Below are positions 11,398 to 44,247 of a DNA stretch of 64,000 bases, piece after piece. Each line of letters opens with the position of its first letter. The first letter of the stretch is position 1. The position numbers and the translations under genes are program-made. The DNA comes from Piromyces finnis finn (taxonomy: Eukaryota > Fungi > Neocallimastigomycota), in the NCBI GenBank assembly GCA_002104945.1, contig MCFH01000011.1, positions 186,001 through 250,000 of the forward strand. Reading direction: 5' to 3'. Under the pieces are notes generated by a model, which did no database searches, was not told the DNA's origin, and saw only the letters and a list, made by a program, of their open reading frames with translations.

Positions 11398-29027
<17,630 letters not shown>

Positions 29028-39054: not shown

Positions 39055-42000
39055 ATGACAACAGTACATAAAATATCTGCGCTTCAAAAAAATGTCAAAA
39101 ACATACGAAATATCTGTATTTTAGCTCATGTGGATCATGGTAATTCTTAATAACTTTATTTATTATATATTTTTATATAATAAAAATGAATATATATGTA
39201 TTTTATTTTCATTTCTAAACCAAATATTTTTTTCTAAATAAAATTTAAATTTACATATAATAATTTAATATATAATATTTGTTATAAATATTTTATTATT
39301 TTTTTTATTTCATTTCCATAATTAAATTTAAATATTACGAAATTCAAGGGAAAACAACACTTTCTGATAGTTTGTTAGCTTCAAATGGTATTATTTCTGA
39401 AAGATTAGCAGGAAAGGTTAGATACTTAGATAGTAGAGAAGATGAACAAGAAAGAGGTATCACTATGGAATCGTCCGGAATCTCATTATCTTTTCAAGTA
39501 ATTTCTAATATTCTTAATAGTGAGACCCAAAAAGGTAAATAAAATAAATAAAAGAATTAAATTATGCTTATAATATTAATTAAAAAAGAAAGGAAAAAAT
39601 AATTTTTTTTTTAAATTTAATTTTTAATGACAAATTTTTATTTATCTCATTTTAATATAATACACTATAATAAAATAGCTGAATTAAAAAGAGAAGACTA
39701 TTTAATTAATTTAATTGATTCCCCAGGACATATAGATTTTTCAAGTGAAGTTTCAATTGCTTCAAGATTATGTGATGGTGCCTTAGTATTGGTTGATGTA
39801 GTTGAAGGTATTTGTACTCAGGTAATAAAAAAATGCAATAGTTGAAATATAATAAACCATTATTTTTATTTTTTATTATTGTTTAATAATAAATTATTCA
39901 TTATTTGAAATGTAATAAAGACACATACTGTTCTTCGACAAGCTTGGGATGAAAATATTCGTTGTATTATTGTTTTTAATAAAATTGATAGATTAATTAC
40001 AGAATTAAAATTAACTGCAACTGAGGCATACATTCATATAAGAAATATTCTTGAACAAATTAATGCTATAATGGGTTCTTTCTATGCCGGAGGAGTAATG
40101 GAAGAAGATAATTTAAAGAGGGAGGTAAGTACGTGATATATTTATTATGGTAAATTTTAAATAAGTATTATTAAACTTTATTATTTTATAGAACAAAAAT
40201 AATACAAATGAAGAAAATGAAGAAAGCGAATGGGATGAAGAAAAAGAAAAAGAAATTTTCTTTTCACCTGAAAAAGGAAACGTCATTTTTGCTAGTGCCA
40301 TTGATGGTTGGGCATTTAGGTAATATTTTTAATTTGAATATATATATAAAAGTTTAATAAACAAGAAAATCTAATTTTGTAATTTTGTAATTTTGTGTTG
40401 AAATTTAAATATAATTTTTATTTTATTATATATAAAGAATTGATTCATTTGCAAAAATTTATGCTAAAAAGCTTGGTATAAAGGAAGCACTTCTTAAAAA
40501 ATGTTTATGGGGTGATTATTATTTAGATCCAAAAACTAAAAAGGTTATTGGTTACAAACATTTAAAAGGAAGAAACTTAAAACCAATGTTTGTTCAGTTT
40601 ATTTTAGATAATATTTGGACAATCTTTGAAGCTGTTGAAAATAAGTAATATTTAAATAATAACTTATTTCATTTAATATTATTTCATTTAAATATTTAAA
40701 TATCAATGCATTATTTATTAAATTAAACTTAAGTGATAAGGAAAAAGTTGATAAGATTGTAAAGTCATTAAATTTAAAGATTTTACCAAGAGATCTTAAA
40801 TCAAAGGATATTAGGGCCGTACAATCAACAATATGCAGTACATGGCTTCCATTAGCACAAACTGTACTTTATATCCTTTTAATAACATTATTTTATATTT
40901 AAATATAATTATAATAGATAACAGTATTGATATAATTATTTTTAATAATACTAATTAAAAAACCCTTAACTAAATATTTACATAGTATTATTGAACAACT
41001 TCCATCTCCATTAGAAGCTCAAAAAATTCGTTTACCAAAACTTTTATATCCACAAAATATTGATAATGTTCCTGATCAAGAATTAACAGAAAATCAAAAG
41101 AAACTTGAAAATGCTCTATATGAATGTGATTCTAGTGAAGATGCTCCAGTTATTGTTATTTTGTCTAAAATGGTTGATGTTAAACCAGAAGATTTACCAA
41201 CAAATCGTAGAGTTCAATTGACAGCTGAAGAAATGAGAGAAAATAGAAGAAGATTATTAGAACAAAGAAAATTACAATTAGAAGGACAAATCTCATCTCA
41301 ATCATCTGGAGCTGTACCTATATCTGAAGTTCAAACATTAATTTCAACTGAAAATAGTAATTCAAAATCTGAAGAAGAAAAAAAGAAGAAAGAGGGTACT
41401 TTAATTGGGTTCGCAAGAATTTTTTCAGGCACTATTCACGAAGGTCAAACAGTTTATGTTATGGGTCCAAAATATGATCCAATGGATCCAACAAAATTCT
41501 GTACCCAAGTTAAAGTAGAAAATTTATATTTAATTATGGGAAAAGAATTAGAAACTCTTTCATCTGTTCCAGCAGGTAATGTTTTTGGTATTGGTGGCTT
41601 AAATGAAGCCGTTTTGAAAAGTGCTACAATTTCCACATTAACCGAATGTCCAAGTTTAGTTAATGTTAATATGAAAGCTCCACCAATTGTTAGAGTTGCT
41701 GTTGAACCATATGATCCAAGTAGTGTAGCTTTCTAATAATATTAAGAAATAATTAAGAATAAAACAGAAATGTAATTTTTTATAACATTTGCAATAAATG
41801 AAATTTTAATAGGTGACATGCCAAAATTAGTTGAAGGTTTAAAACTTCTAAATCAAGCTGACTCTTGTGTTGAAGTATTAATTCAAGAAACAGGAGAACA
41901 TGTTATTGTTACAGCTGGTGAATTGCATTTAGAAGTAAAATAATAATTTAATGATTAATATCATTACTTAATTTAATAATATTATTAATAATTAATATGA

Positions 42001-43461
42001 CTATTGGATTAATTTTGTTATTATTTTTGATAACAATATATATATTATTGATATATTAAATATAATAGAGATGTTTAAAGGATTTAAGAGAAAAATATGC
42101 GAAAATTGGCCTTCATGCTTCAGATCCTATTGTACCTTATAGAGAAACTCTTTCAAATCAACCTGCAATTAATACCAATCCATTCCAAGAATATAGTGAT
42201 GGTATGTTATGAACCATATAATAAATAATAAGATTAAAAACATTTATTTCATCATATATAAAAACTATAATTATTAAATAAAAAATTAGATGAAGAAGAA
42301 AATGATGATGATGACAATGATGAAAATGAAAAAGCTGAAAAAACTAAAACAAAAAAGGATAACTTACCAATTGGTACTAAAATTGTTAATACTTCTAAAA
42401 ATATGTGTACAATTCGTATAAGAGCTGTCCCATTACCTGAAAAGGTCACTAAATTCTTAGTAGACCAATCAGAAACTATTAAAAAAATTGTTGAACACTA
42501 TGACAATAGAAGAAAGAACATTGCCTCAAATGATGAGGCTTTAGATGAACAAAAAGAAATTAAAGATAAAAATGAACGTCAGAAATTCTTAGATGAATTA
42601 CAAAAATTATTTGATGAAGCAAGCGAAAGTTCTACAAATATAATTGATAGTAATAGACAATTTTGGAAGAATATTGTTTCTAAGTATGTAATAAAAGAAG
42701 GATAATAAATAATGAAAATATGCATATATATTTATTTATTATGTTTATTTATTATGTTTGAATTTACATAACAACTATTATATTATTGACAATACTTAAA
42801 ATATTAAAATATTAAAGAATATGGTCCTTTGGTTCAAAGAGAATTGGTCCAAATATTCTGGTTAACAACATTCCTGATTATGAAAGAATTCCGTAATATA
42901 TTTAAGATCGTATTACAAAAATAAAATTTAAATATAGTTAAAATATTATTAATAATGACTATATTATTAAAATTAAATATATACATAGATGGTGTTCTAC
43001 AAGTAATAATGATAAGATTGAAAAAAATTCACAAGATATAGTTTCTGTTAGGGATTTTGAAGGTAGTATTAATTCTGGTTTCCAAATTGCTACCAATTCC
43101 GGTCCATTATGTGCTGAGCCAATGATGGGTGTTTGTTATATATTGGAAAATTTTGATATTAATATAGACATTAATCAAGAAAACAATGATGGTAATTAGA
43201 ACTATTTCATTTATTTTTTTATAAATTATTAAAACTTATTATATTATATTATTGAAATTGTTTTGTTTTAAAACATTGTATATTCAAACTTTTTTTTTAT
43301 TAAAATTTAAAAGCTTTATCTATGAGTACCTTATCTGGTCAAGTTATTTCAACAATCAAAGAGGGTTGTCATAGAACTTTTCTAGAATGGTCACCACGTT
43401 TATCATTAGCTACATATTCTTGTGAAATTCAAGCAACTGGTATGTATAATAATTTAAAAGA

Positions 43462-43499
<38 letters not shown>

Positions 43500-44247
43500 T
43501 AATTTATATTTATTAATTATATTATATTACTATGCTATTTTATTTTATTATTAATCATTTCAGCTGAAGTGCTAGGAAAAATTTATGGTGTTCTTTCAAA
43601 AAGACATGCAAGAATTTACGAAGAAGATTTGAAGGAAGGCACTCAATTTTTCCAAATCAAGTCATTATTACCAGTTATTGAAAGTTTTGGTTTTGCTGAT
43701 GGTAAGTTTATGCATAATAATTAATACAATTAGTTGAAGTTTATAAAAAAATATATTTAAATTCATTTCTTTTTTTTTTTTTTTTTATTCTTTTATTTCT
43801 TTTTTTTTTTTTTTTTTTTTTTGTCTATAAAAAGAAATCCGTAAAAGGACTTCTGGTGCAGCTAGTCCACAACTTCTTTTCCATGGGTAATTAAATGCTG
43901 TATAAATATTTATAAGTTTGATTACACTAAATTTATATTAAATTCTAATATAAATTATATATTAGCTATATTGTGTTAGATCAAGATCCATTCTGGGTAC
44001 CAAATACAGAAGAAGAACTTGAAGATTTAGGTGAAAAGGCTGATAAAGAAAACGTAGCTAAGAAATATATGGACAGTGTTAGAAAGAGAAAGGTAAATAT
44101 ATATATAATAAAAAATTATTTAATGATTTATATTCAGATAAATTAATATTAAAAAATAATTTTATTTCTAATAAAAAATAGGGTCTCTTTGTTGATAAAA
44201 AAATTGTTGAGCATGGTGAAAAACAAAGAACACTAAAGAGTAAATAA
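39055..44247 (+). CDS. EFL1: Elongation factor-like GTPase 1 (EFL1/Ria1), 18 exons
   Basis: Motifs seen: [139 protein letters not shown]. Confidence 0.96.
40871..40981 (+). other. U12-type (minor spliceosome) AT-AC intron 7 of EFL1
   Basis: The 5' site is ATATCCTTTT, the branch site is CCCTTAAC (40963-40970), and the terminal AC is at 40980-40981. Splicing gives [11 protein letters not shown]|SIIEQLPSP, in frame with ORF 41161 and the same length as the conserved WLP...LPSP segment. Confidence 0.93.

Follow-up and report, generated by a model that had tools for sequence, protein, structure and literature searches.

Does a gene for a ribosome-maturation GTPase of the anaerobic gut fungus Piromyces finnis carry an intron that begins with AT and ends with AC, and would the minor, rather than the major, spliceosome remove it? 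The question is raised by a 111-nt interval at positions 40871–40981 of the 64,000-nt stretch of P. finnis DNA analysed here (the whole of which we call the window), which an earlier note had read as a U12-type AT-AC intron in EFL1. Letters, splice signals, reading frame and collinearity all agree with that reading, and we put the probability that the interval is a genuine U12-dependent AT-AC intron in EFL1 at roughly 0.95, with the minor spliceosome as the machinery that would remove it.

The EFL1 gene and its AT-AC intron

The interrupted gene, an EFL1 (Ria1/EFTUD1-type ribosome-maturation GTPase) gene of approximately 18 exons, occupies 39055–44247 on the forward strand, from an ATG at 39055 to a stop codon at 44245–44247, as judged from its domains, a structure match and the cDNA-like contigs of relatives. 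Pfam searches of the exons one by one recovered GTP_EFTU, GTP_EFTU_D2/EF-G_D2, EFG_III, PF25118 (the EFL1-specific domain) and EFG_C, so that outside the interval in question the gene is intact and has the full set of EFL1 domains. A search of solved structures gave human EFL1 as the top match (3e-36), against only 4e-19 for EF2. The predicted product is thus EFL1, an EF-2-like five-domain GTPase with an EFL1-specific insertion domain. EFL1 is the GTPase partner of SBDS in the release of eIF6 from the 60S subunit.

The interval separates exon 7 (40734–40870, forward strand), whose translation ends in ...WLPLAQTVL and whose last base (t) opens a Tyr codon, from exon 8 (40982–41719, forward strand), in which ‘at’ completes the Tyr codon, followed by SIIEQLPSP..., and which encodes domain II (Pfam D2 match). 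Both exons are bounded on their other sides by GT-AG introns on the same strand (40645–40733 before exon 7 and 41720–41812 after exon 8). GC content is 31% in each of the two exons flanking the AT-AC intron and 11.7% within it, the window as a whole standing at approximately 20%.

The intron (40871–40981, forward strand, phase 1) opens with ATATCCTTTT at 40871. Its 5′ splice site, ATATCCTTT (40871–40879), is a perfect match to the U12 consensus /ATATCCTTT and fits /RTATCCTTT; the exon bases at −2 and −1 are TT, not AG. The branch-point box, CCCTTAAC (40963–40970), differs from the consensus TCCTTAAC in its first base, C rather than T, which is a mismatch to U12, and its putative branch A (40969) lies 12 nt before the last intron base (40981). 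Between the box and the terminal AC (40980–40981) the spacer reads TAAATATTT, without a polypyrimidine tract, and BLASTN alignment with the relatives' cDNA-like contigs resumes exactly at 40982.

Removal of the interval restores the reading frame, since the t at 40870 and the first two bases of exon 8 together give Tyr. In alignment with human EFL1, exon 7 covers residues 311–356 through its final codon, which matches residue 356, and the second residue of exon 8 matches residue 359; the exons thus end at residues 356 and 358–359, and the split codon corresponds to human residue 357 without a gap. The conserved WLP...LPSP spacing that had been claimed for the spliced product was borne out, an identical 19-residue distance being found in homologues that have no intron here. 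Translation of the retained reading instead meets an in-frame TAA at 40900–40902 (forward strand): retention would bring a stop after 10 codons and truncate EFL1 past the GTPase domain, and because of this stop removal of the intron would be obligatory for EFL1 function.

Transcripts of related gut fungi

A metagenome scan with a single-exon query yielded no relatives, whereas a query built from a two-sequence alignment recovered three intronless, cDNA-like EFL1 contigs of related gut fungi, each a single open reading frame (L019, 1062 aa; L020, 1084 aa; L021, 795 aa). In exon 8, L019 and L020 share 82–85% nucleotide identity with the window, and at the site each has ...ACTGTACTTTATAGTAT..., the exact junction predicted. 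The cDNA alone does not force the AT-AC register, there being a 3-nt ambiguity because ATA stands at the start both of the intron and of exon 8; the register was taken from the splice-site consensus. Mapping of the window gene on L020 resolved 11 introns. Ten of these were GT-AG, with 5′ sites of GTAAGT/GTATGT type, and AT-AC ends occurred only at 40871–40981.

The same EFL1 site in other organisms

All introns compared between organisms lie in the same EFL1 codon and in phase 1. Five contigs, representing four other fungus-like lineages, carry AT-AC U12 introns at this site. The relative L005, with 78% amino acid identity in the exon, has the 5′ site ATATCCTTAA, the box TCTTTAAC and a branch A 11 nt from the 3′ end; the fungus-like L010 has ATATCCTTAT and CCCTTAAC, again with 11 nt; and the fungus-like L014/L015 and L016 (from GCA_009772055.1) both have ATATCCTTTA and TCTTTAAC, with the branch A 10 nt from the 3′ end. 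By similarity, L010, L014 and L016 group with fungus-type sequences and are not Glomeromycota-like. The fish Ameca splendens (L017) also has a U12-type intron here, of the GT-AG subtype, with the 5′ site GTATCCTC, the box TTCTTTAAC and a branch A 12 nt before the AG. Across six orthologous U12 introns the TATCCT core was invariant and the branch box was kept, while the interiors could not be aligned.

Two invertebrate-like metagenome contigs (L011:3974-4049 and L018:2149-2259) carry ordinary U2-type GT-AG introns, identical in position and phase to the U12-type introns but with GTACGT and GTAAGT as 5′ sites, AG at the 3′ end and no TCCTTAAC box. Conversion of U12-type to U2-type introns is a known process, and such a conversion, or else an independent history, is the likely reading of these two sequences. 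Four further contigs (L006, L008, L009 and L013) and the Glomeromycota-like open reading frames had no intron at the site.

The codon and phase shared by fungi and fish place the origin of the intron no later than the ancestor of fungi and animals. Judged from these sequences, the EFL1 minor intron is ancient, and would have been kept as U12-type in several lineages and turned U2-type or lost in others.

Public EFL1 models of the mudskipper (Periophthalmus magnuspinnatus) and the gray whale (Eschrichtius robustus), both labelled ‘hypothetical protein’, start at a Met right after the site, and the mudskipper has a separate gene model for the GTPase part that lies upstream. These starts are likely to be annotation breaks at the U12 intron.

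A separate observation concerns the partner gene. In a eukaryote represented by two ENA metagenome scaffolds (L006:1262-2989 and L007:1262-2989), whose introns measure approximately 23 nt and whose L006 copy is one of those without an intron at the studied site, SBDS lies head-to-head with EFL1 at a distance of approximately 60 bp. The two genes, both of whose proteins act in eIF6 release, appear to share a promoter region.

Minor-spliceosome components in the genome

Absence of the minor snRNAs, which the earlier note had named as evidence that would count against its reading, is not what the genome shows: U12 and U6atac score above their Rfam cut-offs, and candidates for U4atac and U11 fall just below theirs. 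The U12 gene (66.6 bits, cut-off 53) retains intact both the branch-pairing GAGUAAGGA and an Sm site. The U6atac gene (52.1 bits, cut-off 33; G000:C112:211500-211648, equivalent to L002:1501-1649) has GCCGA where an AAGGA box normally pairs with the 5′ splice site. The U4atac candidate (49.2 bits, cut-off 53; G000:C90:253883-254011, L004:1492-1645) scores as U4 too; between its 5′ region and U6atac a duplex of −38 kcal/mol is predicted, within which GUCCUUAUCU pairs with AGAUAAGGAC. The U11 candidate (38.2 bits, just under the cut-off of 39; G000:C152:317514-317628) has an Sm site, and its 5′ end, AAGAAAAG, pairs weakly with the 5′ splice site. On these scores the genome appears to hold firm U12 and U6atac genes and probable U4atac and U11 genes. 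All lie on other contigs, and an Rfam scan of the 64-kb window gave no match.

There is an apparently compensatory change between two of these RNAs: U6atac departs from the family consensus GUUAGCA in reading GUUGGCA, and the U4atac candidate has UGCCA facing it.

As for the proteins, zf-U11-48K had one match in the genome, which is weak evidence since this zinc finger occurs also in other proteins. PDCD7 (59K) was not found in the genome, a result that is uninformative, the genome being intron-rich and the controls having matched nothing either.

Alternative splice sites and the choice of spliceosome

Enumeration of the region's splice sites bears on whether some other pair might be used, or whether the interval might never be removed, the gene being a pseudogene or the interval an assembly artefact. 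The sole GT in range is at 40864, and the only other donors are GC at 40845 and 40855. It had been claimed that the GT at 40864 fails with the AG at 40984–40985, the only AG that could be used, and so it does: the intron would measure 122 nt, not a multiple of 3, and the product would read WLPLAQTYY-stop, ending two codons on. The GC at 40845 with the AG at 40985 (141 nt) is the sole open, frame-keeping U2-type pair and is formally available, and the transcripts that cross the junction are those of relatives. This pair, however, would drop the conserved WLP-containing segment present in every homologue, which the relatives' cDNA-like contigs keep together with the exact predicted junction, and no GT-AG or GC-AG pair preserves the frame without losing the WLP motif. 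Against a pseudogene or an artefact stand the otherwise intact state of the gene, with all EFL1 domains present, and the orthologous intron in five independent contigs of other organisms. We regard another splice pair, or an interval never removed, as having a probability close to negligible; AT-AC is the only splice solution that fits both the relatives' cDNA and the frame.

Granted AT-AC ends, the intron might still be excised by the major (U2-type) spliceosome, as are a few non-canonical AT-AC introns, for the type of spliceosome is not defined by terminal dinucleotides alone; moreover, the 5′-site box of U6atac is atypical in this genome and the U11 candidate is weak. U2-type AT-AC introns have an /ATAAGT-like 5′ site and a polypyrimidine tract. 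The EFL1 intron lacks such a tract and shows instead a complete /ATATCCTTT together with a TCCTTAAC-type box that lies 12 nt from its 3′ end; its 5′ site and branch box have been conserved across six orthologous introns, the interiors of which cannot otherwise be aligned; and the gene's other 10 resolved introns are of the GTAAGT/GTATGT type. We therefore give hardly any credence to excision by the major spliceosome, and infer that it is the minor spliceosome that cuts the EFL1 AT-AC intron in P. finnis.

Under removal by the minor spliceosome, the U11/U12 di-snRNP would, following the established pathway, recognise ATATCCTTT at the 5′ splice site jointly with the branch-point box CCCTTAAC, U12 pairing with the box through GUAAGGA and bulging out the branch A at 40969. 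U4atac/U6atac.U5 would then join, and ligation of 40870 to 40982 would rebuild the Tyr codon. One may go further and suppose that there is a reason why the intron has stayed at one codon from gut fungi to vertebrates, and that it acts as a conserved regulatory valve rather than being a neutral relic, slow or conditional splicing serving to throttle EFL1. Retained transcripts would in that case be non-productive, owing to the stop at 40900, and the final, eIF6-releasing step of 60S maturation would be throttled; we consider such a role highly doubtful.

Frequency of AT-AC signatures in the window and the genome

A composite AT-AC signature (ATATCCTT, 30–250 nt, YCTTAAC, 7–12 nt, AC) had two matches in the window, at 15990–16075 and 40871–40981, compared with a mean of 0.047 in dinucleotide shuffles, and 0/300 shuffles of the window reached two. 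The statement in the earlier note that two AT-AC introns were unlikely to have arisen by chance is upheld by these figures. The AT-AC intron at 15990–16075 (86 nt) reads ATATCCTTTA ... TTCCTTAAC, then 13 nt and AC; open frames adjoin it on both sides, in phase 2.

The further suggestion of an appreciable minor-intron load found no support. In the 56.46-Mb assembly (232 contigs) the strict signature had 46 matches against 43 for a reversed-pattern control, a figure that is not a census of the minor-intron load, since the signature misses GT-AG subtypes and introns with distant branch sites. At approximately 0.05 matches per 64 kb genome-wide, the two in the window represent a local fluctuation and cannot be scaled up.

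A repeated element containing ATATCCTTAACTTCTCAATTAAGTC..., to which several of the 46 matches belong, was seen to fit the strict signature by chance and, in at least seven copies, contributes false positives to counts based on motifs alone (G000:C24:324131-324222, C25:9033-9124, C25:36839-36930, C46:34655-34746, C57:729578-729669, C166:431695-431786 and C230:52842-52933).

Relation to known minor introns

Larue and Roy (2023; PMC10639083) list P. finnis and Neocallimastix californiae among fungi that possess minor introns along with most, if not all, of the minor snRNAs; in the part of their supplement consulted, no per-species count was found. The EFL1 intron shares with the Neocallimastigomycete U12 AT-AC introns of that study /ATATCCTTT, a TCCTTAAC-type box 10–15 nt from the 3′ end, the terminal AC, a non-zero phase and the lack of a pyrimidine tract, and differs from them in nothing substantial, the first base of its box being C, not T.

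A U12 intron has been published for EFL1 in both mouse (Efl1/Eftud1) and human (PMC10853781, PMC4601534). The vertebrate EFL1/EFTUD1 U12 intron, as read in the fish L017, is like the fungal one in gene, in codon (human 357, a site between ...AVL and MVC/SII..LPSP), in phase (1) and in the 12-nt distance; it differs in subtype, being GT-AG in the fish (GTATCCTC...AG), whereas the fungal introns are AT-AC. In mouse EFL1 the published CG at −2 and −1 would be compatible with an Ala codon split in phase 1 and preceded by a Leu codon whose last base is C.

For P. finnis, the EFL1 intron adds one example to the minor introns already published and its novelty is low: it is a well-documented, position-conserved addition to the published minor introns of anaerobic gut fungi, and carries little weight alone. 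For annotation there is some practical use, as EFL1 will be broken at 40871–40981 by any gene predictor that takes no account of AT-AC introns. For the gene family, the minor intron of EFL1 is shown to go back to the last ancestor shared by fungi and animals, or further.
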